Shown here one piece after another: positions 8,471 through 52,748 of a DNA stretch of 64,000 nucleotides. This stretch comes from Octopus sinensis (lineage: Eukaryota): the NCBI RefSeq assembly GCF_006345805.1, contig NC_042997.1, forward strand, positions 126,108,001-126,172,000. Reading direction: 5' to 3'. The notes beneath the pieces are model-generated. The model made no database searches. It saw only the letters and a list, made by a program, of their open reading frames with translations, and was not told where the DNA came from. A program made the translations under genes and the position numbers. Numbering within the stretch: the stretch's first letter is position 1; each line of letters starts with the position of its first letter.

Positions 8471-9470
8471 CCACTATAGTGATGTGTGGTGCTGAATACT
8501 ATTGACTGTAGGGATTTGTGACGTTAGTGTTGCTGGCAAGGAAAATGTGGTTGAGAACTGCATGTTGTAGGGGGTTTATGGTGGATTTGAGCATATACCA
8601 CTATTGCCTGTAGGTACATGGTGGTATGTGCTCCAGTACTTACCTCTGTGTATCACTTATAGTAGTGGAGTGTGGTAGAGGCTAAAACTAGTTTTGTTCA
8701 AGGGTGAGTAGTGAATAATTACAATAGAGTAATAGCATCTGAAAACACTGAGTTTTATGAAAGTGATGAGAAAATAACTGAGATATATGGCACATTGCTG
8801 TATTCAAGGAAATTATCCTCTACAACATAAGTGATATCCTAAAACCAGTGCTGTGTAAAAAACATCCAATACACTCTGTAAAGTGTTTGGTATAGGAAGG
8901 ACAACCAGCTGTAGGAGCCATGAAACAGACTATGAAATGTGGTGTGGCTCCTGACCTTGCCACCTCCTGTCAAGCTAACTCATGGCAGCATGGAACATAG
9001 ATGTTAAATGATGATGATAGAGTTGTAAGTAATAGAAATAATCACAGGTTCAGAAACTGGTGGCTAAGTGATAAATGGCCATCATACCATTATTCCTGAT
9101 TGAGAGATGATAGATGAGAATTTAGAAAGTTCTTAAATTACCATCATCATTAAGGTTTATGGGTCGGGCAGTTTGAAAGGATACAATGGTTCCAAGGACT
9201 GCAGTGTACTCCAGTACATGGTTTCTACAAATGAATGTCCTTAATGCCAACCATTTAGTGTACAGGGTGCGTTTTTTTTTTTGGCAGCCACACTAGTTAT
9301 GTCTCTCTGCAGCTCACAACACTATGAACCCTGATAGGATGGAGGCTGGCTTTGTCCTCAGAGATGAGAGAATGAGAATGATCAGGTTGAGCTGCATAGA
9401 GATTATATCTTAGATTTTTGTTTCAAATATACATTAAATGGTTCTGACTACCTTATTTATTAACAAGCTT

Positions 9471-9835
9471 AGGTGCAGGAGTGGCTGTGTGGTAAGTAGC
9501 TTGTTACAAACCACATGGTTCCGGGTTCAGTCCCACTGCTTGGCACCTTGGGCAAGTGTCTTCTACTATACCCTTGGGCCGACCAAAGTCTTGTGAGTGG
9601 ATTTGGTATACAGAAACTGAAAGAAGCCCGTCGTATACATGTATATATATATATACACATGTATGTGTTTGTCTCCCCAACATCGCTGGTGTGTTTACAT
9701 CCCTGTAACTTAGCGGTTCGGCAAAAAAGACCAATAGAATAAGTACTAGGCTTACAAAGAATAAGTCCTAGTTGCTCAACTAAAGGCGGTGCTCCAGCAT
9801 GGCCACAGTCAACTGCCTGAAACAAGTAAAAGAGT
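9471..9835 (+). mobile_element. SINE family A
   Basis: Same head, body and tail as 654-1010. Confidence 0.8.
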
Positions 9836-11757: not shown

Positions 11758-13142
11758 CTAAAACAAAGATAATATAAAATTAAAAGACAGTCACAAGGGA
11801 ACATTTTATTTACATCATACTTGGTCAACATTGTTATCTGGAGGTTTTCAGTAAGCTATTGCATTTCTAACAGTGAGTGATAAGGAACAGTCTATACAAT
11901 TTGGGCAGAACAAATACAATACAGGTTTATTAATTTTATCTGAAAGAATCAACATCTACATTTTTATCTTTCAGTGCCGTATATGTAACAGGGTTCTGTA
12001 CAGCTTTCATCTACCAAATTCTACTCACAAACAATGACCCAAATGACATTCGTTGATGCTGCATCAAGGAAACCAAAGAATGAAGGCCAAAGAAAAAGGA
12101 GAAAGGAAAAGCACACTCAATGCCAGAGCTGAAGACACCTCCAAAAATGGGGGGGAGGGGGGCTGGCTGGCATGTCGAAAACGCTAAAGGAGTAGGGGCC
12201 AAAACTGGATGTAGTTCCTCTTGATGATGTCTTTAGCCACTGGATCCTATAAAGGAGCTGTTGAGGTAGCAAACCACAAATCGTGGTTGGAATTCCTTAA
12301 TGGATGTTTAACAGAGGGTTGTTTATCCCTTTTGATCAGTGAGAAAGGCTGAGTTATGTCAATCAACCGTAACATTGGTCAAAAGAGATAAAAAACAACC
12401 GTTAATGTTGTATTGCCTGCAAAGAATGAGTCCATGAAGGTGATCAACACCATGCCCACAGATATTATGGACTATACTGTAATCATCCCAGGAATATGGC
12501 CTATGATCTTAAGGGATGTGTGATTTGTGGAAACACGCATAATGATGCATTAAATGTTTATAGATTCCACCCAAGGATTATTGTTATTACTATATATATA
12601 TATATATACACATGATGGGCTTCTTTCAGTTTCCACCTACCAAATCCACTTACAAGGCGTTGGTTGGCCAGATGCTATAGTAGAAGACACTTACTTAAGG
12701 TGCCATGCAGTGGGATTGAACCTGGAACCCTGTGGTAGGGAAGTAAGCTTCATATGTGCATGAACTTTAACAACAAAATCTGATATGGATTCCACCAAGG
12801 GTCATATGGACCCCGGTTGAGAACCACTGCCCTTAACAGAAAATGGGCATAATAACTGAAGGATTGCTAATTTAACTTGCATCAAATTCAGATTGATCTT
12901 TGCTCTCTCCTTTATATATATATATATATATATATATGCATCTTACCTGAAAGGAACTGAAGTATTCACCAACTCTAAAGAAGACAACTTAACCTTTGGG
13001 ATTCAGATTATGTAATGTTACCTCAAGAGATTATCAGATATAGTGAAACTAAATATTTGTAGTGACTTGATAGGTTTTAGTTATGTTGAACATGCATAGA
13101 AAAAATGAAGTAGGATACAGTTAAAGAAAAAGTTGAACTGAC

Positions 13143-13272
13143 CTCATCAGCAAGACGTAGTAAAGTGCGGAGAAATCTAGCAAGATGCATCTGTCTTGCG
13201 GATAATTCTCCTCGGCCACTGTAATCAGTACGGTAAAGTGCTGTAGCACTGTCAACTATCAACAAAGCATAC
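13143..13272 (-). CDS. RAD51: RAD51 coding exon 7 ([43 protein letters not shown])
   Basis: attttcag| acceptor, |gtcagt donor; Walker B LLIVD; 130 nt. Confidence 0.97.
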
Positions 13273-14204
13273 CTGAAAATAACAAGAGCATCACACATAA
13301 TAAATATTTCAGCTGATAAAACTGATTCTGGATATAATAAAATCCATTGTCTTATTTTGCGAGTTACTTGATAATGGTACCATGAGAAGAAGGCACCCAG
13401 TACATTCAGTAAAGTGGTTGTCATAAGGAAGGGCATCCAACCATAGAAGCGATGTAAAAGCGGACAACAGAACTTGTTACTGTCCACTGGCTTGCCACTT
13501 CTTTTGAAACATCCAAGCTATGCCAGTATGGAAAATGGATGCTAAATGGTGAGGTTGACGTGTTCAGTGATTAAAGTTCTGTCTGGCTAAAATGTTTCTG
13601 TATAGTGAGGAATAGCATGTAAATTTAACAATCACCATCAACATTTTAATATCTATACCCCAGTTGAACCGTCCAACCCATGCTAGCATGGAAAGCGGAC
13701 GCTAAACGATGATACATCTAGAAGTCTGCTATACAGCACATCAGCATTTGTTTCAATCAACTTTTTGTCCCATATGTGAAACCCCTGAAATCTACCAGTT
13801 CTTCCCATCTCCATGTTCTATAGTTATCATCCATGGCACTTTTATTACCCAGCACTCGTCCTTTATACATGAGTTGATGTCTTTATCCCCAACTGCTCTC
13901 TCATGCAAATTTACATTACACAGCCAGCAAAATGTGTCTCACTAGCAGATAGCATTATGCATCATACACATGCTTCATTGTTTCACTTCCATATGGAGAA
14001 AGACCGATACTCTTTGTTGTCAAAAGACTCAACAACACTCTAAACCGCTTCCACTTTATTTTCTTACTAACTACTTCCATATTATCAGAATAGCTACATT
14101 CAATATTAACGTAAAAGAAATTGTTGTTCTGTCTTGATATACACTGACATTTAACTTGTACAGTATACAACAAACAGAATACTGCCTTATTGGGTATGGC
14201 TCAT

Positions 14205-21034: not shown

Positions 21035-21243
21035 ACTCTTTACTCTTTTACATGTTTCAGTCATTTGACTGTGGCCATGCTGGAGCACCGCCTTTAGTCG
21101 AGCAAATCGACCCCGGGACTTATTCTTTGCAAGCCCAGTACTTATTCTATTGGTCTCTTTTGCCGAACCGCTAAGTGACGGGGACGTAAACACACCAGCA
21201 TCGGTTGTCAAGCAATGCTAGGGGGACAAACACAGACACACAA

Positions 21244-21274
<31 letters not shown>

Positions 21275-21436
21275 ACAGGCTTCTTTCAGTTTCTGTCTAC
21301 CAAATCCACTCACAAGGCATTGGTTGGCCCGGGGCTATAGCAGAAGACACTTGCCCAAGATGCCACGCAGTGGGACTGAATCCAGAACCATGTGGTTGGT
21401 TAGCAAGCTACTTACTACACAGCCACTCCTGCGCCT
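21035..21436 (-). mobile_element. SINE family A (near-consensus copy)
   Basis: Reverse complement of the family A head, body and tail. Confidence 0.82.
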
Positions 21437-22832: not shown

Positions 22833-23208
22833 ATTCTTTTACTTGTTTCAGTCATTTGACTGTGGCCATGCTAGAGCACTGCCTTTAGTCAAGCAAATCG
22901 ACCCCAGGACTTATTCTTTGTAAGCCTAGTACTTATTCTATCGGTCACTTTTGCCGAACCGCTAAGTTACGGGGGACGTAAACACACCAGCATCGGTTGT
23001 CAAGCAATATTGGGGGGACAAACACAGACACACAAACATATACATACATGTACATATATACAATAGGCTTCTTTCAGTTTCTGTCTACCAAATCCACTCA
23101 CAAGGCTTTGGTTGGCCCAAGTCTATAGTAGAAGCCACGCAATGGGACTGAATCCGGAACCATGTGGTTGGTAAGCAAGCTACATACCACACAGCCACTC
23201 CTACGCCT
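22833..23208 (-). mobile_element. SINE family A
   Basis: As above. Confidence 0.8.
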
Positions 23209-26089: not shown

Positions 26090-26470
26090 CTTTTATTTGT
26101 TTCAGTCATTTGACTGCAGCCATGCTGGAGCACCACCTTTGGTTGAGCAAAGCGACCCTAGGACTTATTCTTTGTAAGCCTAGTACTTATTCTATCGGTC
26201 TCTTGCTGAACCGCTATGTTACGGGGATGTAACCACACCACCAACGGTTGTCAAGTGATGTTGGGGGGACAAACACAGACACATAAACATATACATACAC
26301 ACACACATATATATGACAGGCCTCTTTTCAGTTTCCATCTACCAAATCCACTCACAAGGCTTTGGTCGGCCCGAGGCTATAGTAGAAGACACTTGTCCAA
26401 AGTGCCACGCGGTGGGACTGAACCCGAAACCATGTGGTTGGTAAGCAAGCTACTTACCACACAGCTACTC
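26090..26470 (-). mobile_element. SINE family A
   Basis: As above. Confidence 0.78.
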
Positions 26471-32524: not shown

Positions 32525-33660
32525 CTAGTGAAGGCTGTAAATACTTAGGCAGTATAATTACTTAGATACTCAGCAGCTTTTGTAGATTGGACAAAAACTG
32601 ATTTAGCAAAGCTAGACAGAAGAACTAGGAAGGAATTCCATATGAGTGGAGTAGCAAGATTATTCTTACCTAGAAAGCAAGACAGAAGAGGGTTAATGTC
32701 AGTAGAAGACTGCATGAAGTTAGCTATGTAGGTAATAGTAAAGAAAGTATATTAAAAGCTACTACAGTCACAAGACAGGGAAACCAAAAACCCGAACAAA
32801 GTTAAAAACCAGAAAAAAGAACAGAAGTTATCTGACTGGCAAGAGAAGGCATTGCATGGTAGATTCACAAAAATAGTTACAGCAAACAGTAGTAGTGAGA
32901 CATGGTTATGGTTGCAGAAAGGAAGGTTGAAAATGGAGACAGAAAGTTTGTTAGTAGCAGCACAAGATCAAGCATTTGTGACTAATTGGATAAAAGCCAA
33001 GATAGACAGAAACCAATTAGAGTCTCAATGTAGGTTATGCAATTCAAAAGAGGAAAGCATTACATATATAGTAAGTGAATGTAGCATGCTGGCACAGGAA
33101 GAGTACAAGACAAGACATGACAACCTTGGGAGAGTAATCCACTGGGAGTTATGTAGAAAGCTAGGATTCGAATATACTAATAAATGGTATGAACATGAAA
33201 CTAGTAAAGTACTAGAGAGTAAGAAAAACAAGATGTTGGGAGACTTTAACATTCAGATTGAAAGAGAAACAGAAGCTAGAAGGCCTGATTTAGTTGTTGT
33301 AGATAAAGAGAATAGAAAGTGCCAGATAATTGACTTTACGGTCCTAAATGAGGAAAAAATCAATATGAGAGGAATAGGAGAAATATCAAAGTACCAGGAC
33401 CTAGTAATTGAATTACAAAGACTATGGAAAGTGTGGGTAAAATGTATCCCAGTAGTTATTGGTGCATCAGGAATTATCCTTAAAGATTTGAACAGATGGA
33501 TAGAGGAAATAGGCATAAAACCCAGTTTAGTACAGCTCCAGAAAACAGTGTTATTAGGGACAGCTAGGATACTTAGGAGGGTTCTTGGCATCTAAGGTTA
33601 CTTGTAGCCTGATGTTAGAATTTTTTTCTTTTCCAACTGTCTAATCTGTTGTGTATAATA
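32525..33660 (+). mobile_element. 5'-truncated R4/Dong-clade non-LTR retrotransposon (CCHC finger + restriction-like endonuclease)
   Basis: ORF 32852-33595 with AAQDQ, CRLC...C, RHD, RPDLVVVD...IIDF motifs; broken upstream RT-thumb remnants (LDRRTRK, RLFLPRK); (TAA)n on both sides. Confidence 0.88.
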
Positions 33661-34887: not shown

Positions 34888-35052
34888 ATAGGCGTAAGAG
34901 TGGCTGTGTGGTAAGTAGCTTGCTTATGAACCACATGGTACCGGGTTCAGTCCCACTGCGTGGTACCTTGGGCAAGTGTCTTATACTATAGCCTCGGGCC
35001 GACCAAAGCCTTGTGAGTGGATTTGGTAGACGGAAACTGAAAGAAGCCTGTC

Positions 35053-35094
<42 letters not shown>

Positions 35095-35230
35095 ATGTTT
35101 GTATGTCTGTGTATGTCAGCCCTAGGTGATAGTAGAAGACACTTGCCCAAGGTGCCACGCAGTGGGAATAAACCCGGAACCATATGGTTGGTAAGCAAGC
35201 TACTTACCACACAGCCACTCCTGCGCCTAT
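34888..35230. mobile_element. Inverted (tail-to-tail) pair of truncated family A SINE heads
   Basis: ATAGGCGTAAGAGTGGCTGTGTGG... on + from 34888 and ATAGGCGCAGGAGTGGCTGTGTGG... on - from 35230. Confidence 0.8.
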
Positions 35231-36024
35231 ATACATATATAATTGAAAATCTTCCCACACACTGTCAGGAAAAACATTCAGTTGTATGTGTATATATATA
35301 TATATATATATATGTTTGTGTGTGTATGTATGTATATATATGTCTATCAATATCTGTATCTATAAAAACACACACACTCACACATTTGTGTGTAGGTATA
35401 TATGAACCTTATATATACAACTATGATTATATCAATATGTATAATTGTATAGTTGAGTAGGTGTTTAGATGTACATAAGCCAAACTGAAATATTGATACA
35501 ATGCTACACCACCCATCTCACCTTCCCTATCATATTCTTCCAACAGATATCTATTGAATTCTACTGATTCCTTGTTACCAAAGTTGAGGCGTGGTCTTAC
35601 TTTTACACTAGATACTTTTATTTTGTATTATTGTTGTGGATTTTTTTTTAATAATTGCCGTGTTCTTCCTCTTCTGTGGATATCCATTGGAAGTATTGAC
35701 ATGTATATAAAAGTTGTTGCTGACAGACGATTCTTCACAGTGTTACCAAAGTCTGAGCAAGTTCAACGAGCTAAGTGGAAGGGAACTTCATTGTCACAGC
35801 ATAGCAACTGGTCACCTTTTATCACCTGGTTTTTGCTCAAGAGATGAATCTGATGATATACAGCAAGGTAAGTTACACCTTACCAGCTCTTTTTCTCCCT
35901 ATCACCTGTCCACTCATTATATATATTTTTTTAATTATAGGCACACATGCACCTTTCCTGACAAACATACAGAAACATATATACAGCAGGGGTGGGGGTC
36001 TCTATAGATGAACATTCTGGAACT

Positions 36025-36419
36025 CTCTCTTTACTTGTTTCAGTCATTTGACTGTGGCCATGCTGGAGCACCACCTTTAGTCAAGAAAATCGACCCCAGG
36101 ACTTATTCTTTGTAAGCCTAGTATTTATTCTATCAGTCTCTTTTGCTGAACCACTAATTTACGGGGATGGAAACACACCAACATCAGTTGTCAAGCAATG
36201 TTGGGGGGACAAACACAGACACACAAACATATACACACGCATACATATATATATACGACAGGGTTATTTCAGTTTCCGTCTACCAAATCCACTCACAAGG
36301 CTTTGGTCAGCCCAAGGCTATAGTAGAAGACCCTTGCCCAAGATTTCACGCAGTGGGACTGAACCCAGAACTATGTGGTTGGTAAGCAAGCTACTTACCA
36401 CACAGCCACTCCTGCGCCT
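36025..36419 (-). mobile_element. SINE family A
   Basis: As above. Confidence 0.78.
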
Positions 36420-37584
36420 CTGTTCATTAACCAAATTGTTTGTTGCATATTAATTGAAATACATATCAATAGGGGTCATCTATTCCAAGCCAAACCCAGA
36501 CTCCACAATAAAGATATGAAATTGTGTTTATTTGTCCATCCATTGATAGCAAAGATGTAAATATATACATATATGAGTGGGTGTTGAAAAGTTCCAGGAG
36601 GATCAGTTAATTATGATTTTATTGAACATATTCCCCTCTCAGATTCACATACTTATTGCAGCAGTCCTTTGGTTTTTTTCTAAGCCCTGTAAAAGAACTC
36701 AGAAGATTACGCCTCTGACCAGGTCTTTTGTGACACCCTTAAAGGCAGGATTTTTTTAGCACCCCCTCATATGTGTGTATGTGTGCATTTTTTCCCTTTG
36801 TCTTGCATCTGGTGATCTACAGTTATGAGAAATATCATGAAAGAAAATATGAGAAATATCATTTCCTATATAAAATACAAAAATTTGTAAGTTACATGAG
36901 ATCATACATGGATGTTAATGTCTCTTTTGCATACACTCTTCCAGCCATATATATGATTGTGTAGTCTACTCATGGCTTGCTGTTCAAATTCCTGCTCGTT
37001 AATTGAATATAATTTTCATCAGAATAACTGTTGGCTATGCAATTTGTTCATATAGTATAACATTCACATATGCTCTCCCAGCACATATACATACACATAA
37101 TCTACTTATGTCTTGTATTCAAATTTCAGCTCACTAAGTGAATAAATTTTTATTTGCTTAGTGAGTTTGCTCATGGACAGTTGATGAAGTTGCAACTCAT
37201 TATGGAAGTTCAATTTTCTTCAGAAAATTGTTAGTTATTCAAGTTATTCGTTTAGAGAACCATTTGTAAAAAGGATGAAGGTCTCTGGAACACTTGAGGG
37301 GTGCCGGTCTTATCCTGTTACATTTAATTATTTGTCGAAAGGAAAACCAAAACTTCGACTATCTTCAACAGCAATAAATAATATTTTATTTTTATCTGGA
37401 TTCGCAAATAAAAATATATACACATATATTTTCTTCAGGGCGAACCAGTAGCCAAAGCCATGAAACTATTCACAATAGTTAACTTGTGTGAGCCAAAATG
37501 CTGTCTCCGTTCCCGCGTAGAAGCGGGGCTTCTCTACGTGTTGGTTTTTTCTTGAGAGAACCTTGAGTCGTGTCCACTCGATTC

Positions 37585-37740
37585 GGCTGCAGCTTCAAAA
37601 AGACAGATCTAGCGGGAAACTTTTCTGTTGGTAGTTCTCTGCACATGGGCATGAGGGAACTTCCGGCAGCCTACTGGAAGTAATCCAATTCTGCGCATGC
37701 ATGCTGAAAACTTCCAAAAGCGTCACTACAAATTCTTATA
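37585..37740. promoter_or_regulatory. CpG-containing promoter-like motif cluster (CHR, E2F, ETS, CCAAT, NRF1-like, ZNF143-like)
   Basis: TTCAAA 37594-37599, GCGGGAAA 37612-37619, ACTTCCGG 37659-37666, CCAAT 37685-37689, TGCGCATGCA 37692-37701, ACTACAA 37725-37731. Confidence 0.5.
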
Positions 37741-38579
37741 TGGGTATCCTACTGTATTTTACACACACTGATGATAATTAGAACATTTAGTTATAGATTC
37801 TCTTGCATGATATTTACTTCATTGCATTTTTTAGTTCAAATATTACTAACGTCAGCATTACTTTTCACTCTCTCATGGTCAACAATATACATACAGACAT
37901 ATAAATTTGAAAATATCATGAATTAAATAAAACAGTTACTAGCTGTTTAGCAATCAAACCTGCCATATCATCATCATCATCATCACCATCATTTAACGTC
38001 TGCTTTCCATGCTGGCATGGGTTGGACGATTTGACTGAGGACTGGCAAACCAGATGGCTGCACCAGGCTCCAATCTGATTCTACAGCTTGATGCCCTTCC
38101 TAACATCAACCACTCCAAGAGTGTAGTGGGTGCTTTTACGTGCTACTGGCATGAGGGCCAGTCAGGCGGTACTGGCAACGGCCACACTCAAATGGCGTTT
38201 TTTACGTGCCAGGCCCAAATATTCTACCATTCTACCAGTTTATATTTAAACTGACCAAATCAGGCCTCAAACGTCTGCCTGACAATATCGTTCTAACAAA
38301 ATACAGCCACAACATCAAAATTCCAAAGCTATAAGACATTGCATGATTAATTCAAAACAATGCAAATAAACATTACATTAAATGGTTTAACTGGTGTTTG
38401 GAGCATAAATTAACATGAAATTTTGAATTTAGATCACTTTAATAGAGAAAGTTTGTATCATAAAACCAAGGGTATTTTCAGGTGGGTTGACATAAGAGCT
38501 TAAATCCTTCAGCATTCAGATTACTCAGTTAAATCTAATGCTTGTTTATTCACATTGTCTTTGAATTAATCATGAACTA

Positions 38580-38762
38580 TAGGTGGAGGAGTGGCTGTGT
38601 GGTAAGTAGCTTGCTAACCAACCACATAGTTCCAGGTTTAGTACCACTGCATGGCACCTTGGGCAAGTGTCTTCTACTATAGCCTCGGGCCGATCAAAGC
38701 CTTGTGAGTGGATTTGATGGACAGAAACTGAAAGACGTCCGTTGTATATGTGTGTGTGTGTC

Positions 38763-38801
<39 letters not shown>

Positions 38802-39032
38802 TTTATGTATGTGTGTGTGTATATGTTTGTGTGTTTGTTTTTATCTCCCCAACATCGCTTGACAACCGATGCTGGTGTGTTTGCATCCCTGTAACTTAGC
38901 GGTTCGGCAAAAGAGACTGATAGAATAAGTACTAGGCTTACAAAGAATAAGTCCTGGGGTCAATTTGCTCGACTAAAGGCGGTGCTCCAGCATGGCCACA
39001 GTCAAATGACTGACACAAGTAGAAGAGTAAAA
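38580..39032 (+). mobile_element. SINE family A nested in a TTAA MITE
   Basis: Full head-to-tail copy with expanded TG core. Confidence 0.78.
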
Positions 39033-39949
39033 GAGTTATCTTGCATCTTCGAGCTTTCAATGATGTGATTGTTTACTTTTAGGACATTGTAGGGTATGTG
39101 TGATAGGTTGGATCCAGCCAGTTTGAACATAAAACATATTGAAAATTGGCCAGATATGACTGGTTTAAATGCTAAAGGGTTAAACCAAAATAGGAGCACT
39201 TTAAAATAGGAAGGTTTTGTATTTTTTATTGCTTAAGATAAAAAGGGCAGTGCCATGATCCTTTTAAGTGCCTCTGAGTTTGGTGGTAGAAGGGAGATAG
39301 TTATTCTCAGAATGGAAAAATGTGGCCCAAATGCTTGCGAGAGAGCAGACTCTATCAGAAGGCATCCAATGACCAAGTGGTAGTGTTAAACAGAACCAGA
39401 AGTGGCCTCAGGCAGGTCACTATTGAGTGGGTTAATGTTGGTTTTATTTTTACTGTTATGTAGGTGTAGGAATGGCTGTGTAGGTAAGAAGCTTCCCAAC
39501 CACGTGGTCTTGGGTTCAGTCCATGGCACCTTGAGCAAGTATCTTCTACTACATCCCTGGGCCAACCAAAGCCTTATGAAGGGGTTTGGTACACGGAAAA
39601 AGAAAAATGCCCATCATTCACACACACACACACATATGTATGACAACCCATGTCAGCATGGAAACAAATATTAAAGATGATGACGATGATATATGTATAT
39701 ACATACATATATATATATTTGTGTGTGTGTGTGTCTGCCTGTATGAGTTAGAGATTAAGCAACCATCTAAGAGATAATAAATATCCAATATACTACTGGA
39801 TGTGTACCTACGTATTTTTAACCAAGTGCTTACTATTGCAGAGCAATATTGCAATTGAATACTAGGTATGGGTGGAGGTAAACCAGAAATTTACCTGGGA
39901 TTTATAAGGCAAATAAGAAAATGAAGAGAATAATCAATCGACAAACATC

Positions 39950-41500
39950 ACCCTGTAAACTTTCATTTAGATCTACTCATTAATTGATTATAATCATATG
40001 TATATGAACATTTTGTGCAATATAATTACTATTGCTGTGTCTGATGTTATTATTGTTGTTGTTATTCTTCTTCTTCTTCTTATTATTATTAGTGTTTATA
40101 TAACTGTTATTATTTTTTCTATTTAAGTAAAAAGTGTCAAGTTTTTTTTTATTATTCATGGGGGAGATGATAGTATCCAGGTTATGTGTCAGGCTATAAC
40201 CTATTCTTATTGCTTTACTATTAATGATTTCCCAGTATTTCTTTTTTCCTTTTATAAAGTATTTGCTAATTAGTTTAAAGATTGTTTTTACTAAGTTATT
40301 TTTGATTTGCATAGCATATGGTAATATTAACCAGACAGTATCATTTCCTTTGTTCACATGATTAGGATTATTGTTCTTTGGTCTATTGCTATTATTTGGG
40401 CAATAATTTTTATTATTAATAATACTGACATTATACCTATCATTAGCATTATTATTGTTATCACTATTAATGGAGCTGATGATGAATACCTGTTTGGGAT
40501 TTCTTATATCCTTCTTATATCTGTGTGCATTTCTAGAATTCATAAATTTATTTTTAATTCCATTATTATTTTTATCATTGTTCATATCATGGGTATTCAT
40601 ATTTTTTCCATTATTACGGAGAAAGTTTTTAATTTCATCCTTATGACCTGCATTATACTTATCCTTGTGTTTATTAAATATCACTTCATTTGAGGTAAGT
40701 TTTGAGATTCTTTTGCTTATATTTCTTAAAAGGTTTTTTTTTCTTGATTGGGGATGGTTACTGAAATTATTTATATATCTTAAATTAGAGTTCTGTTTCA
40801 TATACAGTTCATGTAGTCCAGTGTTTAAATTACAGTTTGCATCTAAATAGCTAATGGAGTAATTTTCATTTTCTATAGTTATAGAGAGACCAAATCTACT
40901 GAGAAACTTATGTAGGCATTTCTTTAATAATTTTAGGCCTATTAGAGCCATTTCTAACTATAAAGAGCGCTTCATTTCTATACAGACCTCCTCTTGATTC
41001 TGGGAATTCTCTGTTTATTTTCTCTAAAAGGTAGAGTTCTACAAAGTTCATCACTTCTGGCAAGTCTGGTGAGCCCATTGTGATATCAAAGAGATTAGGT
41101 GTATCATTTTTTGCTGTTTTTTAGGCCATGTGTGCAACATTAATTTACCTTATACTTAAATTAGTGAAAATAAGAGACTGTGGGGTTAATTGAAGAGAAA
41201 GGATTTTGTATGTCTATTTTCAAAAATTTCTGATTATTCTTATTTTGTATGTTGGAGAACCAGTCTAATGCACTGTAGGTGTTACTCCATAGTTCAAGCT
41301 TGATTTTGCTTTTTAGTGTTGGGAGATATTTATCCAAAATTACCTTACTTAGTTTACTACCTAAATATCTGATTTGTTAGGGCATATTAATCTAACTTGT
41401 GTTTTATTTATGAAGTTATCCTTATGGTCCTTAATTGTAATATGGGGTCTGATTGATGTGAATGGTTCTGTCTTTCTTTACCATAAAATGTAATCCTATG
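39950..41500 (-). pseudogene. Degraded Penelope-like element reverse transcriptase
   Basis: Fragments ITIKDHKDNF..., LDWFSNIQNK...FLKIDI, LFDITMGS, GLYRNE (degenerate YRDD), RYINNFSNHP...KRISKL, IRIGYS; multiple stops and frameshifts. Confidence 0.82.
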
Positions 41501-44500
41501 GCTTATGTATATCACCTTGGAATTGACATTTTTACCATTCCTTACTATTTTTATTATGTTATTTTATTTTATTATTTTACCTTACTTCCTCACATGTTAG
41601 AGTCCTAACATTATGATCTCTTTGATGAAACTTTGGGGCTCAATCATTGTCCAATGTTTGTTCAACTTTTGTACAATCCCTGTACATTACTGGTATGATG
41701 TGGAAAACTTGGCAGATTGGACAACCCCATAGTAGAAACAGCTGTAAGAGTTTAGTATTGTTTCACTCATTTCTTCTTATTCATTTATTGATCTAGTTAT
41801 TTACTTGTTTATTTTGATTACTTATACATATGATTGTAATCAATTAATAAATAGATATAAATGAATGTTTACAGGCTGATGTTTGTCGATTGATTATTGT
41901 CTCCATTTTCTTATTTGCCTTATATATATATACATACACACACACATATATTGCAAAGGAACTTTGTCTTGCAAGTTACTTGGTGACCCTGCCGGTGCTG
42001 GTGCCACTTAAAAAGCATCCTGTCCACACTATAAAGTGGTTGGCATTTGGAAGGGCATCCAGCTGTAAAAACCTTGCCAAAACTGACCTCGCCTGTGCTT
42101 GTGCCTAAAAAGCATTCAGTCCACTCTGCTGGGTGGTTGGTGTTAGGAAGGGTGTCCAGCTGTAAAAGCCCCACTAAAATAGATGCAGAAGTCTAGTGCA
42201 GGCTTCTATCAAACCGTCGAACCCATGCAAGCATGGAAGGCAGACACTAAATGATGGAAACATATGAGGGTGGGCATTTGGTTGCAGAATATGTCTCAAC
42301 AAAAATCTTTCTCACCCATGCAAGTATGGAAAAGTGGATAACACACATACATATATATAGGTGAGTAAAAGTGTTTTAAAAAGAGTTCAGTGTAATATGC
42401 AATGATAATAAAATGTCAGAAGGTAGAATTATATATTGTACCTTCATCTTCTTAGCTTTCTATCCTTAATATACAAATATATACATTTAAATAGAGATCA
42501 GTGTAAAGATTACCACCATCGTCATCATCATTTTATGTTGATTTTCCATGCTAGCATGGGTTGTTCTTACCTTAAGAAGCTTAGAACTTACGCATGATCA
42601 AAATAAGTTATTATTTGACATTATTGTTTCTCTGATAGCTTTATGCTATTGTTTGGTAACTTAAATGACCATTTCAGTGTAGAATTCCAAGAATAGATTT
42701 TTTTTGACTTTGCAACTCAATTCCAAAACCCAAAACAGCTTATTGATTTGTGACCAGCAATTATATTTTGTTTCTGAGTTGTAGCAAAAAGGAATTAATA
42801 TGATATTGATTGTGATTCTCATTGGCTTCAGTTACTGGAACCCAATTACTAAAATGTATAATTCTTCAAAATATTACTCCAGAATGTTCTAGGAAGCAAA
42901 GAGAAGAAATCAATGGTGATTAATAAATTGGAAGTTGACCAGACCTACTTTCTTAAACGTCACTAATTTGGCAGCTGGTTGAACAGATGCTGTAGTGCAG
43001 ACATTTATGAAATAGATGGGACTTGTTCAGATCCTAGCATTATTGGCTTTTATCCTAAGAATTGAACTCAGGTTCACCCTCTTAAGTAGTTGTATATTCC
43101 ATAACTCAGTGGGCATTAATAAAAACTTCTCTTACAGACATGGATGTGTGATTTAAGAAGCTCACTTTCGTTTTGGGTTCAGTTCGACTGCATGGTACTT
43201 TGGACAAGTGTCTTCTACTATAACTGCAAACCATATCAGTGAATTTGGTGGACAGAAACTGTGGAAGCCCATTGAATATAAGTGTGTGTGTGCCATCATT
43301 TGACAAGCGGATTTGGTTTGTTAATGTCCATGTAACTTAGAGGTTTGGCAAGAGACCAACAAAATAAATACCAGACTTAATAATATTTTTTTTTTCTACT
43401 TTAGGCACAAGACCTGGAATTTTTGGGGAGGGGGCTAGTTGAGTAGAGTTCAGTGTAGTATGCAACTGGTGCTTAATTTATCAACCCTGAAAGGCAAAGT
43501 CAACCTCAGTGGAATTTGAATTCAGAATGTAAAGACTGACGAAATACCGCTAAGCATTTTGCCCAGTGTGCTAATGTTTCTGACAGCTCCAGACTTAATG
43601 TGTCACTGCCATGAAAAAAGCACCCATGTTGGCACCACGTACACTCTGTAAAGTGGTTGGTTGTAGAAACCACGCCAAAACATAAAGGGCATCCATCTGT
43701 AGAAATCATGCAAAAAAACCTCTGGAGCCTAGATCCACAAAAGTTCTGACATGAATTTAATGTTATTGGTATATTTTATTTAGAGTCTATAAATGAACAA
43801 ATACTATAGGTTCAGGCATAGCTGTGTGGTAAGAAGCTTGCTTACCAACCACATGGTTCTGAGTTCAGTCCCACTGTGTGGCACATTGGGCAAGTGTCGT
43901 CTACTATAGCTTCAGGCCAACCAATACCTTGTGAGTGGATTTGGTTGACAGAAACTGAACTACATTGTTCCAAACAGCTATAGACACTATATCTACAATT
44001 TCTTTTACAAGTTTCATGCTGGGGCACCATTGAAGTGTTTAGTCAAACAAACCAACCTCAGTGGTCATCATTTAATGTCTGTTTTCCATGCTGGCATGGG
44101 TTGGATGGTTTGACAAGGACCTGGCAAAGCGGGAGGGTTGCACTAGGCTCCAGGTTTTTTTTGCATGATTTCTATAAACGATTAAATATTTTACCAAGCC
44201 CTTCTCAAATCTATTAAAAATTAATTGCAACTTAACAGGTAGTTTACTCATTGGAAATATAGAACTGAAAAGGTTAAGGAAGTAAAGTAAATAGGCTATT
44301 GACAAATGTTTTACATATAGGTGCAGGAGTGGCTGTGTGGTAAGTGGTTTGCTTACCAATCACATGGTTCTGGGTTCAGTCCCACTGCGTGACACCTTGG
44401 GCAAGTGTCTTCTACTATAGCTGCAGGTCAACCTCTAAGCCTTAAGTGGATTTATTTGGTAGATGGAAACTGAAGAAAGCCCGTTGTATATGTATATGAT

Positions 44501-44852
44501 TGTGTGTGTTTGCCCCCTCACCATCGTTTGACAACTGATGTTGGTGTGTTGATGTCCCCGTAACTTAGCAGTTCGGCAAAAGAGACTGATAGAATAAGTA
44601 CTGGGCTTACAAAGAATAAGCCCTGAGGTCAATTTGTTCGATGCTCCAGTCAAATGACTGAAAGAAACAAAAAGTAAAATATAAAAATTTAAACTGCCTG
44701 TTTATCCTCTTTTGATGTGAACGTTTGAGATCAACCATTGTTTCTCTTGATCAAAACACCATATTTTAAAATGTTAATATTTAAATTAAAACCTCCAGTA
44801 TATGTAAGAAAATTGTAAGTTCAGTTCTATATTTAAGAGATGAGGAATCATG

Positions 44853-45255
44853 TACATTGTTTACATTTGACGGATTTTTGTCCTTATCTTGTTTGTTGTT
44901 AACACAATGTTTCGGCTGATATACCCTCCAGCCTTCTTCAGGTGTCTTGGGGAAATTTCAAACCTGGGTTCTCATTCCTAAGGTACTTTTCGATGTTATT
45001 ATTATTACTATTGTTATTGTTCAGGTCACTGCTTGGAATCAAACTTGGAATCTTTGGGTTAGTAGCCTGCACTCCTAACCACTATGCCATGTGCAATAAT
45101 AATAATAATAATAACATTGCAAAATACCTTAGGAATGAGAACCCAGGTTCTCATTTCCTAAGACACCTGAAGAAGGCTGGAGGGTATATCAGCCGAAACA
45201 TTGTCTTAACAACAAACAAGATGAGGACAAATATCTGTCGAGTGTAAATAATGTA
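44853..45255. mobile_element. Inverted pair of Penelope-type pseudo-LTR segments, each with a minimal hammerhead motif, flanking a tRNA-like head
   Basis: Arms about 44853-45006 and 45097-45255; CTGAAGA-A-GGCTG..CAGCC-GAAAC in both; spacer on - has TGGCATAGTGG and a degenerate B box. Confidence 0.7.
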
Positions 45256-45638
45256 AAAAATTGTAAGTTGTTTCAAACACCAGATTAACAATGACGAAGT
45301 TAAATCCCATAAAATTCTTGATTATTCTTAAATGTAATCGGTGCATGTATGGCTGTGTGGTTAAGAAGTTTGCTTCCCAGTCACATGGTTTCAGGTTCAG
45401 TCTCACTGTGTGACACCGTAGACAAGCGTCTTCTACTACAGTCTTGGGGCAAGCAAAATCTTGTGAGTGGGTGTGGTTGTAGATGGACACTGAAAGAAGC
45501 CCATAGTGTGTGCATGTACCCTTGCCTTGACATCTTTGAAAAACATGTCTGGTGATGGTGGGATATTACCTTGCTTTGAAATGGATGATGGTTGGTGACA
45601 GGAAGGGCATCCAACCATAGACCCTTGTAAGTATAGTA

Positions 45639-46016
45639 AAACTAGCAGTATCGCCTGGCATTGCTCGGGTTTGTTTTGACCCTTTAGAATTGGAATTTTC
45701 AAAAGTAAAAATTTTGCATTATGTAGCTTGTTATTCTCTTTAAGTGAACATTTTTCTGGTTGAAATACACCAAAAAATGGCGACACAGGAGTAAAAAAAT
45801 AGGGATTTTCATAGAAAAAAGCACCTTTTTGATGTAAATAATTTTTGGTGTTAACATTGTCTGATTTGAATTTTTTCTTCTATGGAAGGAAGAGCAAGCC
45901 TTCTTCTATCATACTCTCAATTTTGGTCAACTTGTACCGCAAGGTCTTGGAGGAGATAGTGTTAGTTGAAGGCTAACTTGCCATACACAGACAACTTCAG
46001 CTTTATATATATAGAT
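45639..46016 (+). mobile_element. Non-autonomous Helentron/HINE (DINE-1-like) element
   Basis: 5' AACTAGCAGTATCGCCTGGCATTGCTCGGG and 3' CAGCTTTATATATATAGAT are end signatures typical of this group. Confidence 0.55.
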
Positions 46017-46244
46017 GAAAGTGAAATGATATGATGATGAATGGTAAGCTGAAATATGGATATGAAAGGGTTATTTGTTGGAACACCTGACTTTCAAGCT
46101 GAATGTTCTTCCTGTTGTTGTCCACTCAACTACCAGATGGTCAGTGGTTCAGGACCCTAAATATACAACCATTGAATCCATTGACATAAGTTGAATAATA
46201 ATGTGATTAATCATTTGCCCTCTCTTTTTCTTCTCTCTTCACAG

Positions 46245-46505
46245 GCAATCGTCATTTTGCTACTTTACTGTGTATCAACAAGCTGCATCTCTCTTGGATA
46301 CCAAGGATATGTCTGTAATCCACGTTTTGCCCAACAATACTGTCTGATGGGCTGCTTGAGCTGTATGGAATACTATGGCGTACAAGTTTATAACCTCGCT
46401 CACTGTTGTTATGACTGCCAGATAACTGGGGCTCGTTTGATTGACAATGGCCCAGATAAATGTTCCATGAAGTACATCAGAGACACTTATCGACTACAGG
46501 AGTGA
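46245..46505 (+). CDS. Terminal exon of a small secreted Cys-rich prepropeptide, eclosion-hormone-like
   Basis: Strong pyrimidine tract ctctttttcttctctcttcacag|; 86 codons + TGA; hydrophobic AIVILLLYCVSTSCIS (signal peptide part), then a mature region with C-x8-C-x3-C-x2-C-x13-CC-x2-C-x14-C; AATAAA at 46761-46766. Start exon not resolved. Confidence 0.72.
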   Translation, partial: AIVILLLYCVSTSCISLGYQGYVCNPRFAQQYCLMGCLSCMEYYGVQVYNLAHCCYDCQITGARLIDNGPDKCSMKYIRDTYRLQE

Positions 46506-47326
46506 TGCTGCTGTTTGACAGTGGAGTACAACAAGAAGGAAATGCTTAACTATATATTTACAGGTTTGACAATGATTCATCATCTTCAAAAATTCAGACG
46601 GAAGGTGTACAGATTATCTCCCAAGTACTTCTTCAAAGGTAGAGTTGATAAAGATTATGACTCTAAGAGTTCGTCAATGGAATAGTACAAGATTCTTGAT
46701 GTGAATCTGTGTACTGAAACAAATTTTGTTGTGTCTTGGGAGGGTCATTATGCCAATAATAATAAACATGCAATGGTTCAATATCACTTCTTTATTGTCA
46801 GCTAATGTGTTAAATATCTAACCATCTAACTAATCAATTGTTTGTTTAGTTAGTTGATTAGATATTTAACAAATTGGTTAAAATAAAGAAGAGGAATTGA
46901 ACCTGTGCATGTGTTATTATTTCAGGGGTAATGCCTCTTCTAAGACACAACAATGGAACATTATTTATAGAAAATATTAATAAACTATTAGATGGCAGAT
47001 TGCACAGAAGTTTATGTGTTTTCTTTGATATTGGCCATGGTTAGTGAAGTTAGTTATACATGAGATGAAGAATATGGAATACAGTTTAGAAGGTTTGGTT
47101 TGCTGTAGTACCATGGACAGAACACTACTAGCAGTGAACAAGCGTAGTGATGTAAATGTAGGTTGTGAGAGTTTATTATAATCACAACACAAGATATAAC
47201 GAGTGGACCTGGGAAGATGACTGGGGATTTTCCCTCCTGAATGTGATGTATAGGGGCAGAGATGAAAGATGTGTTTATGGTTATGAATGATAAGCTACAG
47301 AAAATTGTGAATTGTAACATATACAG

Positions 47327-49976: not shown

Positions 49977-50617
49977 TCATGACTTGTTTCTGGACTTGAT
50001 TTTTTGGAAAACTTGTCTCATTCGGTTGTAGGTACCAGTGGACTGAGGCAGGTTCTCAAATGGTATGTGATCTTGAATACCAACTGAAAAGTTTGTTCTG
50101 TCTGGTAATGTGGGGAATGGACCTTTATTCTGATTCACTGGTGTACCATAATCTTTGCCAAGAGACTGACACATTGACGGAGATGACAACGATGCAAACC
50201 CATCTGAAGCTGCTTGACTGTTACTGCTCTCGTCACTTGATAAAACAATGGAATTAGATTCTGATGCTTTTATCTGACTCTCAGAACTTGGCTGACTGTC
50301 TGAGTCTTCTTCCTGAAGTTGTTTCTGAAGACATCGATACTGTGCTTCAAGATCTTCCAAGGAATCTGAACTGAGAGCAGCATCAGATTTGGGTTTTGGT
50401 AGACAGAGAGGCTTTCTTTTAGAGGTAACCTCTGTAACCGGGCTCTGCCGTGAGGGCTGATTCTTAGGAGAATATTTCGAATCTGAACTGGAGGATGGAG
50501 GTGTGTCAGAAGGAAGTGGTGGTTTCGATGGTGGAGTATCAGATGGTAGAGGTGGTATGAAACAGTTGGTCTCCGTTAAGCGACATGTTCCCAGGTCTTC
50601 ATAGTAAGGGAAACTCT
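49977..50617 (-). CDS. ZCCHC8: ZCCHC8 terminal exon (Pro/Ser-rich region and C-terminal LPDRTNFSVGIQDHIPFENLPQSTGTYNRMRQVFQKIK)
   Basis: ttttcttcctcatgcag| acceptor, phase 1; C-terminal motif matches the conserved MTR4-binding end of ZCCHC8 (PFENLP..TG.Y..MR). Confidence 0.9.
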
Positions 50618-52748
50618 CTGCATGAGGAAGAAAAGAAAAAGAAACAACACCAGTAGAGAAGTTAAAAAGGGAAATAGAACATGTTGAACCTAATTTACAG
50701 AGTAACATTCTTCTCTCTAAATTTAACAGTGATATGAATATCAGAAACTTCTGAGTTCAGTTCCAGACAACGTTCAGTTTCATATCTATCCTTCAGAGGT
50801 CATTAAAATAAGCTATAGTTAAGTATCTGGTCAAATTCCACTCAACAGTCATAAACTTAATAATAATAAGAATATATTTTGCCAGATCTGACTGGACTGG
50901 TGCAGCTTTCGGGCTCCCCAGACCCCAGTTGAACTGTCCAACCCATGCTAGCATGGAAAGCGGACGTTAAATGATGATGATGATGATGATGATGATGAAT
51001 AATAATAATCCCTTCTACTATAGGCACAAGGCCTAAATTCCGTGGGAGAGGACCAGCTAATTAATGCTAGTGATGAATAAATGCCCTGATGCAGTACCAG
51101 GCAGTGGCTCTCATGGCTTCTGATCTAGACTGATCGGAAGTGCTATCATGTACATTGTTTTGTTATAAAAAATGGGCTACAGCAAATATTCTGCTCAATA
51201 CCACAGATTTGTTTGTCAGCTGCTTGACTGTAACCAGTTAAGCATGTCGCTTAGTGGCTGATGATATGTTCGACTCTGATCATGAGCAATAGAGGGGGAG
51301 CATCATAGCCATGTGTTGAGAGGAATTCTTTGGGGTTTGAATATTTCACCACTAGAAACATAGGTGTTTCATTCAACATCCTTAAACGACCCTAATTCAG
51401 GGACCTTTTAAGCAGGATGGGCTTCTTGACTTGAAGAAAATTCTAAATGATGATGGTGATGATAACGTTTGTTTCACTGCAAAACAACAGGTAAAATTTG
51501 TCCCAAGTCTTCAAAGTCATATCACAGCAAGGGCTGGATTGTCATTTAGTGCAAGAAAAGATTATGAGTTTTAAACCAGAGACCTGACACTTTAAAATGC
51601 TTACAAAAGAATGGATGCAGCTAAAAGCATCCAAGTACCTCAGTTCAACACCATTCAGATGGCAGTGTAAAACTGGAAGGCATAAAGTCTATCGCCTAAA
51701 TAGTAGGCCATGGTAGGATTTGAACTCATAAGGCAAAGAGGTGAAACAAATAATACTAGGCATCCTGTCCAATTGTCAATTCATTGCCCAGAGTATTAGA
51801 TGTAGGATTAACAAATCAATTCCACTAAATTCCAGTGATGATAGCAATAGATTATGTGCTAAATTGTGGAGCAGATTTTGAATGTCATTAAGACAATAGG
51901 CATGCTTTGTCTTGTTCCTCCATTTCAATGTCAGTACAGATGAAGTGGATAATTTGTATTTCCAACATCTTTTACACACATGATCCACCAAAGGGTTGTT
52001 CAGCCTGTTATATAAATCTGCCTCATCTGTCTTACAAAAAATGGAAAGACATACTGAATAATGTAGTCAACAGAATATGTCCTCTAAGATAGCAGAAAAG
52101 ATGTACATGATAAAACATCTTCGATCCTAGGTGTATATAAGGTATAAGTCTCTATCTAACCCATGCTAGCAAGGAAAAACAGATGTAAAAAGAGTGTGTG
52201 GTTCACTTCCCAACCACATAGTTCTAGGTTCAGTACCACTGTGTGACACCATAGGCAAGTGTCTTCTATCATAGCCCTGGGCCAACCAAAGTTTGGTGAG
52301 TGGGTTTGGTATATGAAAACTGGAAGCCCGTCATATATATATATATGTACCTGTGTTAGTGTCTCTTTGCCCTGACATCGTGTGATATGAGCAAATATTA
52401 CCTTGCTTGGAAACAGGCTTAGCATCAGGAAGGGTATTTGGTTGTATAAAATCTGCCTTAACAAATTATCTGATCCATGCAAGTACCATAAAATGATGAA
52501 GATGATGATGATGACGATACACGTCATGTTCTCTGCATCCCTCTCTAGCAGAGCATTCCTAATCTTGCAAGCTCATGGGTGCTGGTGCCATGTAAAAAGC
52601 AGCCAGTACACTCTGTAAAGTGGTTGGTGTTAGAAAGGGCATCCAGCCACAGAAACCATGCCAAAAAAGGCATGAAACCTGGCTAGCCCCTGCCAAACCA
52701 TCCAACCCATGCCAGCATGAGAAACAGATGATGATGATATATACACGC

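Follow-up and report, generated by a model that had tools for sequence, protein, structure and literature searches.

An eight-cysteine peptide gene of Octopus sinensis, very probably from a paralogous branch of the eclosion hormone superfamily

What kind of peptide is encoded by a short cysteine-rich exon in the octopus genome, and is it the eclosion hormone (EH) of an animal that does not moult? The exon lies at positions 46245-46505 of a 64,000-nucleotide stretch of Octopus sinensis DNA (assembly GCF_006345805.1, contig NC_042997.1, positions 126,108,001 to 126,172,000 of the forward strand), which we call the window. A first-pass annotation, made from the letters of the window alone, had assigned the exon to an EH-like hormone with eight cysteines. 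Here we conclude with high confidence that the exon belongs to a real two-exon octopus gene, and that its eight-cysteine (8-Cys) peptide represents a paralogous branch of the EH superfamily.

We began with the exon itself. Direct reading revealed a polypyrimidine tract followed by the acceptor cacag/G at 46244/46245. From there 86 sense codons (46245-46502) run to a TGA stop (46503-46505), which makes this the second and last coding exon. Its translation is AIVILLLYCVSTSCISLGYQGYVCNPRFAQQYCLMGCLSCMEYYGVQVYNLAHCCYDCQITGARLIDNGPDKCSMKYIRDTYRLQE, identical to the string given in the first-pass annotation, namely AIVILLLYCVSTSCIS followed by LGYQGYVC...RLQE. A polyadenylation signal, AATAAA, lies 256 nucleotides (nt) past the stop codon. 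Direct reading and translation thus confirmed the clean acceptor, the 86-codon exon, the hydrophobic signal segment and the downstream AATAAA that had been claimed for the locus. The window is 62% A+T and contains ten open reading frames (ORFs) of at least 130 amino acids, a background in which the length of the exon 2 frame is unremarkable. Exon 2 is considered real because orthologues exist, not because of the length of its ORF.

These orthologues came from a word-indexed search over 5.8 billion proteins, which returned a single octopus cluster at E=4e-52, with 99% identity to annotated proteins of 94/95 amino acids from Octopus vulgaris and Octopus bimaculoides. The O. vulgaris protein (CAI9715859.1, 'hypothetical predicted protein', 94 amino acids) has one I/V difference from the window product, and the O. 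bimaculoides protein (XP_014776337.1, 'uncharacterized protein LOC106873470', 95 amino acids) belongs to the same cluster. No informative name emerged from this search, which yielded only the octopus cluster and two unnamed proteins. The two GenBank entries labelled 'hypothetical' and 'uncharacterized' could now be named. The O. bimaculoides orthologue is Ocbimv22024629, whose precursor is 95% identical to that of the window.

The O. vulgaris and O. bimaculoides gene models both open with MNLMIYSK. In a six-frame translation of the window this peptide had a unique match, at 35844-35867, placing exon 1 10.4 kb 5' of exon 2 and in front of an AAG/gtaagt donor. Because the N-terminus of the annotated orthologues is encoded there, the gene has two coding exons, extending over window positions 35844-46505 on the plus strand and encoding a precursor of 94 amino acids. 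The O. vulgaris gene model has the same structure, with a span of 10,185 bp. The parts of the gene are as follows:

35704..35713, plus strand: TATA-like box tatataaaag, a putative core promoter about 130 nt 5' of the ATG, read directly.
35844..35867, plus strand: coding part of exon 1, ATG AAT CTG ATG ATA TAC AGC AAG (MNLMIYSK), the n-region of the signal peptide; donor gtaagt at 35868; 24/24 identical to O. vulgaris.
35868..46244, plus strand: intron of 10,377 bp, phase 0; GT...AG read directly.
46245..46505, plus strand: coding part of exon 2, 86 codons and TGA, with the remainder of the signal peptide (AIVILLLYCVSTSC...) and the entire mature peptide; 260/261 bases identical to O. vulgaris.
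46293..46502, plus strand: probable mature peptide of 70 amino acids (LGYQGYVC...RLQE), its cleavage site placed by inspection and its start possibly up to 2 residues earlier.
46506..46790, plus strand: predicted 3' untranslated region (3'UTR), with AATAAA at 46761-46766; 273/275 bases identical to O. vulgaris.

Judged by inspection, the precursor would consist of a signal peptide (MNLMIYSK, the hydrophobic core AIVILLLYCV, and STSCIS) and then the 70-residue peptide, which extends to the stop codon. Reading the precursor after the signal peptide, we found no dibasic sites and no propeptide. On sequence grounds, then, this is a genuine two-exon octopus gene for a small, predicted secreted peptide.

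Next, we asked how the locus is conserved among octopuses. O. vulgaris chromosome OX597814.1 (123.66-123.69 Mb) aligns collinearly with the window, at 95-98% identity, which places the window in an octopus of the vulgaris group and agrees with the cephalopod origin suggested in the first-pass annotation. In exon 2 only one of 261 bases differs from O. vulgaris (giving I60V), whereas the adjoining intron and upstream sequences differ at 2-3%. The interval 35735-35867 is 99.2% identical, and the 1 kb upstream 97.1%. The 3'UTR and 1 kb downstream are conserved about as much as exon 2, and for this reason the conservation of exon 2 against O. vulgaris is a mild signal only. In the comparison with O. 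bimaculoides, the signal peptide carries several substitutions and an indel, against identity at 68/70 positions in the mature part. A mature part that is kept while the signal peptide changes is the signature of a constrained endogenous ligand, unlike that of a fast-evolving toxin or antimicrobial peptide.

The first-pass annotation had named a salivary or toxin-like Cys-rich peptide as its alternative, and this observation bears on that view in a wider form: the product would be a secreted Cys-rich effector that is not a hormone (a toxin of saliva or venom, an antimicrobial, or a component of a matrix), and its EH likeness would be recruited or irrelevant to its function. The peptide is indeed small, secreted and disulfide-rich, octopuses are venomous, and the venoms of arthropods and cone snails include recruited EH-like and CHH-like peptides (PMC13311285). 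However, besides the near identity of the mature sequence in two Octopus species, the window contains one copy of the gene, with no tandem expansion, and the eight cysteines of the peptide, together with one G, one Y and one P, are invariant over four phyla that include non-venomous bivalves, chitons and phoronids. Toxins and antimicrobial peptides typically diversify fast, and conservation of this kind is the reverse of that. Strong conservation of the mature part, invariants kept in four phyla and the absence of tandem expansion in the window together make an effector role very improbable.

The family in which these invariants are found was defined as follows. The eight cysteines of the mature peptide are at positions 8, 17, 21, 24, 38, 39, 42 and 57, and the family motif is C-x8-C-x3-C-x2-C-x13-CC-x2-C-x14-C, with the window peptide showing exactly this spacing. 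A six-Cys framework, C17-x3-C21-x2-C24-x13-C38-x3-C42-x14-C57, can be read within it, leaving C8 and C39 (the second of the CC) as the additional cysteines. The spacing C-x3-C-x2-C-x13-C-x3-C-x14-C, the N-terminal Cys and the CC pair reported for the exon were therefore correct. Against 1.84 billion representative proteins, phmmer gave 35 matches at E<=1e-3. All but one (34/35) carry the 8-Cys motif, whole or truncated; they are small, most have a hydrophobic N-terminus, and their E-values range from 1.5e-19 to 9e-4 across 34 representative clusters. Identity over the domain between the window peptide and the other members is 32-61%. Across 31-32 aligned members the eight cysteines plus G20, Y33 and P54 are invariant, and D51, G53 and S58, all present in the window peptide, are kept in at least 90%. 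In terms of the motif, these positions are a G before the third Cys, a Y nine residues after the fourth, and D-x-G-P before the last Cys, which is followed by S. The family is represented in every class of molluscs, in nemerteans and phoronids, and in one trematode.

The best-scoring phmmer match, P0003 (1959 amino acids), was rejected. It is a Cys-free protein of bacterial type with 17 near-identical repeats of about 71 amino acids, and we consider the match spurious because weak scores were summed over the repeats, which is a caution for phmmer ranking. Three members (P0035, P0036 and P0037) are divergent, in that [AE]PP replaces DGP and the N-terminal loop is longer. Two features set the octopus peptides apart from many of their relatives: they have IDNGP where most other 8-Cys members have IDDGP, and they end in ...DTYRLQE, whereas many bivalve and gastropod members carry a W-x-[KR]-R-[FY]-G(K) tail.

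We then compared the 8-Cys family with EH by profile-profile alignment in hhalign. The EH spacing is C-x3-C-x2-C-x12(13)-C-x3-C-x10(11)-C. The comparisons gave the following:

8-Cys family against spiralian six-cysteine (6-Cys) EH: probability 96.5%, E 9.3e-10, score 44.
8-Cys family against arthropod EH: probability 31%, E 5e-4, score 21.
Spiralian 6-Cys EH against arthropod EH: probability 97.9%, E 5e-13, score 57.5.
8-Cys family against CHH/ITP (a profile of five sequences): probability 0.2%, E 0.27, score 9.7.

As a null, the columns of the target alignments were shuffled 200 times, giving a mean score of 10, a standard deviation of 2.5 and a maximum of 21; reversed target profiles scored 8-10. 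The score of 44 against spiralian 6-Cys EH is thus about 13 standard deviations above the shuffled columns. In this alignment C17, C21, C24, C38 and C42 fall on EH cysteines 1-5. This register leaves the N-terminal C8 and C39, which comes second in the CC pair, as the two extra cysteines, in agreement with what had been proposed from the letters. The matches are not confined to cysteines: both families share a Gly at +5 and a Tyr at +9 after the third framework Cys, so that the Gly and the aromatic residue picked out in the first-pass annotation are indeed in register with EH-type peptides, as well as a T at +3 after the fifth Cys and [LIV]-x-D before the last Cys. The two octopus peptides, 8-Cys and 6-Cys, also align in BLASTP, with 32% identity over 37 residues and with their cysteines aligned. 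Since the direct link to arthropod EH is borderline and the spiralian one lies far outside the null, the connection of the 8-Cys family to arthropod EH is transitive, through spiralian 6-Cys EH. Moreover, because the CHH/ITP profile, a similar Cys-rich helical design, scores at background, the EH signal is specific. These comparisons support homology of the 8-Cys family to EH-type peptides at the level of sequence profiles.

Structure prediction gave a compatible picture. An AlphaFold2 model built from a 32-sequence alignment reached a predicted local distance difference test score (pLDDT) of 89 and a predicted template modelling score (pTM) of 0.77. It has helices at mature residues 15-28 and 35-45, with C17, C21 and C24 on the first and C38, C39 and C42 on the second. 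In the model, this arrangement of helices and cysteines is what disulfide staples spaced one turn apart between antiparallel helices would require. The connectivity of lepidopteran EH is C1-C5, C2-C4, C3-C6, which the predicted layout would fit. A model of the octopus 6-Cys EH, built from a two-sequence alignment with a pLDDT of 55, places the cysteines on the helices in the same way, although at this quality it lends weak support.

Several results weigh against placing the peptide in the EH superfamily. The search against Pfam Eclosion (PF04736) that the first-pass annotation had put forward as a check gave no match for the window peptide at E<=10, and one of 28 members of the 8-Cys family touches the Pfam profile (E=0.035), while 13 of 15 spiralian 6-Cys domains, the positive control, match it at E<=10; we therefore rejected a place for the window peptide in that Pfam family. 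The direct score of 21 against arthropod EH equals the maximum of the 200 shuffles and is marginal. The octopus peptide does not have the C-terminal W-x-[KR]-R-[FY]-G tail common in other molluscs. Neither a sequence search of the Protein Data Bank (PDB) nor a Foldseek fold search found a structure for comparison. Finally, similar frameworks can arise by convergence among short helical peptides rich in Cys.

The last point can be put as an explanation in its own right: the 8-Cys family is real and conserved in spiralians, but its EH likeness arose by convergence on the same disulfide-stapled helical hairpin, with no common ancestry. The negative Pfam result and an arthropod EH match no better than the best shuffle agree with this, as does the nature of the alignment with spiralian EH, which spans just 41 columns, with Cys, Gly and aromatic residues predominating, and leaves the N-terminus and the last loop unaligned. 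The sixth framework Cys lies outside it, and the last loop is 3-4 residues longer than in EH. Convergence does not, however, readily account for a score of 44 so far above composition-preserving column shuffles and reversed profiles, nor for the shared non-Cys positions (G +5, Y +9, T +3 and [LIV]-x-D), and the CHH/ITP profile remained at background despite a similar design. We consider it a most unlikely account, and favor descent of the 8-Cys family from within the EH superfamily.

If the peptide belongs to the EH superfamily, is it the octopus EH? The answer depends on a second gene. Octopuses possess a 6-Cys gene (P0045 / Ocbimv22037767) with exactly six cysteines, which scores 30 bits on Pfam Eclosion, above the gathering cut-off of 25 bits, and has a precomputed PF04736 match. 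O. vulgaris and O. bimaculoides share all 96 residues of its product (100% identity). The gene is on a 100-Mb O. vulgaris chromosome, and the orthologue of the window gene is on a 226-Mb one. Within the window we found neither a second 8-Cys copy nor a 6-Cys EH gene. P0045 is unnamed in the source databases ('---NA---') despite its Pfam Eclosion match.

This gene has to be considered together with the published record. De Oliveira, Calcino & Wanninger 2019 (eLife 8:e46113, PMC6660194) reported EH ligands in molluscs, annelids, nemerteans and phoronids. Their 'eclosion-hormone-ligands' file (Figure 2-source data 3) includes Ocbimv22024629, and the 6-Cys Ocbimv22037767 appears separately in the same file. 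The file also contains 8-Cys relatives from all eight mollusc classes, one nemertean and two phoronids. Their text describes EH ligands as having six conserved cysteines, and neither singles out nor names the 8-Cys group. The CLANS coordinates in the source file are unclustered and carry no information on grouping. The orthologue of the window gene is thus listed under EH ligands without distinction, and the six-Cys framework is the same and in register, so one might take the window gene as the octopus orthologue of arthropod EH itself, with two cysteines added. That reading deserves little credence in view of the Pfam-positive 6-Cys gene of octopus. In addition, Pfam Eclosion hits at E<=10 separate the two groups (13/15 spiralian 6-Cys domains versus 1/28 8-Cys members), the 6-Cys group scores 57.5 against arthropod EH where the 8-Cys group scores 21, and the eLife dataset has both kinds coexisting in Octopus, Idiosepius, several other mollusc genera and Lineus. 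The true EH orthologue of octopus is the 6-Cys, Pfam-positive gene on another chromosome. The existence of this separate gene makes the window gene a paralogous branch and not 'the' EH. The EH-family assignment of the first-pass annotation is thus partly supported: the hhalign probability against spiralian 6-Cys EH backs it at the level of the superfamily, with the qualification that the window gene is a paralogue and that the direct arthropod link is weak.

The EH-ligand classification of this gene is already published and is not new, since the O. bimaculoides orthologue was part of the 2019 EH-ligand dataset. The 8-Cys branch as distinct from EH has never been named, discussed or functionally tested; it is unstudied as a distinct signal because the literature lumps it with EH and states six cysteines. 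In an oyster study (PMC8398477) the name Cragi-EH was given only to a two-domain 6-Cys precursor. Our full-text literature searches by gene identifiers and family motifs retrieved no paper discussing the gene or the family, and no functional study of spiralian EH signalling. The flatworm membership of the family is not covered by the eLife dataset: the trematode member is a 'secreted protein' of Opisthorchis felineus (TGZ64814.1, P0035), and this one divergent member extends the 8-Cys family to parasitic flatworms.

How might such a peptide work? In our model, a signal peptide would directly precede a peptide of about 70 amino acids that is predicted to fold as a two-helix hairpin, presumably cross-linked by four disulfides. 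The spiralian-wide 8-Cys family (Mollusca, Nemertea, Phoronida and Platyhelminthes) would constitute a paralogous branch of the EH superfamily, which would have retained the six-Cys EH framework with loops longer by one and by three to four residues, and would have added one pair of cysteines, one of them N-terminal and the other second in the CC doublet. The peptide would be secreted as a hormone or neuropeptide. By analogy with insects, its receptor may be a single-pass membrane protein, most plausibly a receptor guanylyl cyclase, whose extracellular domain it would bind so as to raise cyclic GMP, signalling in some non-moulting process.

The analogy rests on the insect EH receptor, a membrane guanylyl cyclase according to Chang et al. 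2009, as cited in PMC5627052; activation of such a cyclase by EH is known from insects only. Orthologues of this receptor are reported in molluscs (PMC6660194). For the 8-Cys peptide we propose the membrane guanylyl cyclase only tentatively as the receptor class, at somewhat less than an even chance. The peptide is a paralogue with two extra cysteines and a different last loop, a canonical EH coexists with it, and it may well have a receptor of its own. No receptor gene lies in the window. In a broader proposal, which we rate as just short of evenly balanced, the 8-Cys peptide would represent a separate ancient spiralian hormone system: the paralogue would have arisen by a split from EH that predates the divergence of molluscs, nemerteans, phoronids and flatworms, would have been retained beside the 6-Cys EH, and would act through its own receptor, a second membrane guanylyl cyclase or another.

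Of the two EH-superfamily peptides of octopus, the locus provides a clean gene, single-copy and under strong constraint, for the less obvious one. The coexistence of a 6-Cys EH and an 8-Cys paralogue in octopus and other spiralians frames receptor deorphanisation as a matter of matching each peptide to its membrane guanylyl cyclase, if it has one, and recognising both peptides helps to keep the 8-Cys gene from being wrongly labelled 'the' eclosion hormone. More generally, the locus touches the functional question of EH-type signalling in non-moulting animals.

The surroundings of the gene were also examined. As the first-pass annotation had described, it sits between transposon debris and ZCCHC8: an ORF resembling a reverse transcriptase tail is found upstream, and a gene for a 719-amino-acid protein with a PSP domain (ZCCHC8-like) downstream, tail-to-tail with the peptide gene and ending at about 49977. 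The intron contains interspersed repeats, a TG microsatellite (38749-38838) and a minus-strand Asn/Lys-rich ORF. A SINE-like (short interspersed nuclear element-like) repeat of about 200-400 bp is interspersed through the window, also in the intron and the flanks of the peptide gene; its many copies lie on both strands and show 80-90% mutual identity. The neighbouring features are:

661-842, 9470-9835, 21042-21436 and 22835-23208, both strands occurring: example copies of the SINE-like repeat, from a megablast of the O. vulgaris locus against the window.
26094-26464, 34890-35228, 36025-36411 and 38589-39028, both strands occurring: further example copies from the same megablast.
13077-13487, minus strand: ORF of 136 amino acids, 5' of the peptide gene, with a clear Rad51 domain match (Pfam PF08423) at 69.5 bits, where the cut-off is 22; probably a single exon from a gene for a RAD51-family recombinase.
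32852-33595, plus strand: ORF of 247 amino acids, 2.2 kb 5' of exon 1; its zf-RVT match falls below threshold (22 bits, cut-off 27.5), and it resembles a C-terminal tail from the reverse transcriptase of a retrotransposon.
39980-40951, minus strand: low-complexity Asn/Lys-rich ORF of 323 amino acids inside the 10.4-kb intron, with no Pfam match; it may have arisen by chance in A-rich sequence or be what is left of a mobile element.
49977-50708, minus strand: Ser/Pro-rich ORF of 243 amino acids, about 3.2 kb from the poly(A) signal of the peptide gene and collinear with the 3' end of the O. vulgaris 719-amino-acid PSP-domain gene; Pfam gave no match on this exon alone.

Finally, we compared the window peptide with known peptide systems. 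CLCCY, a lophotrochozoan family of Cys-rich neuropeptides (Conzelmann et al. 2013, PMC3890597) with a name reminiscent of motifs in the window peptide, was rejected as a relative: its Platynereis, Capitella and Aplysia sequences have a different Cys pattern and no similarity, with a knottin-like C-x6-C-x6-CC-x4-C... after a KR site, unlike the window peptide. CHH/ITP/MIH peptides (Crust_neurohorm) are also helical neurohormones of about 70 amino acids with C-x2-C-x12-C-x3-C and an N-terminal Cys far upstream, and a distant link between EH and ITP has been suggested in the literature. A relationship with them was rejected on the hhalign result given above. The window peptide does not have the CHH/ITP framework C-x15-C-x2-C-x12-C-x3-C-x8-C, and 28 members of the 8-Cys family gave no Crust_neurohorm match at E<=10.

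With arthropod EH (PF04736; Manduca, Bombyx and Drosophila) the window peptide has in common a similar size, a precursor with one peptide after the signal peptide, the six-Cys framework in register and the Gly five residues after the third Cys. It does not carry the arthropod EH hallmarks N-C-x-Q-C-K and P-D-C, and it differs in its two extra cysteines, its longer loops and its origin in a non-moulting animal. Spiralian 6-Cys EH, like the window peptide, is secreted, has C-x3-C-x2-C-x12/13-C-x3-C, carries Gly and Tyr beyond the third Cys and T..G..[LIV]-D ahead of the last, and is predicted to have the same helix-to-Cys layout. It differs from the window peptide in having six cysteines, a last loop of 11 residues instead of 14, no GP motif and a positive Pfam Eclosion match, and bivalve 6-Cys EH often comes as tandem two-domain precursors, unlike the window peptide. 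The closest counterparts are the 8-Cys sequences within the eLife dataset (for example Idiosepius notoides 228468, Crassostrea gigas CGI_10016531, Aplysia 524902773, Lineus longissimus 40328 and Phoronis spp.), with which the window peptide shares the same Cys spacing, the same G, Y and P invariants and the same near-invariant D, G and S, and from which it has no substantial difference besides the C-terminal tail and IDNGP described above.

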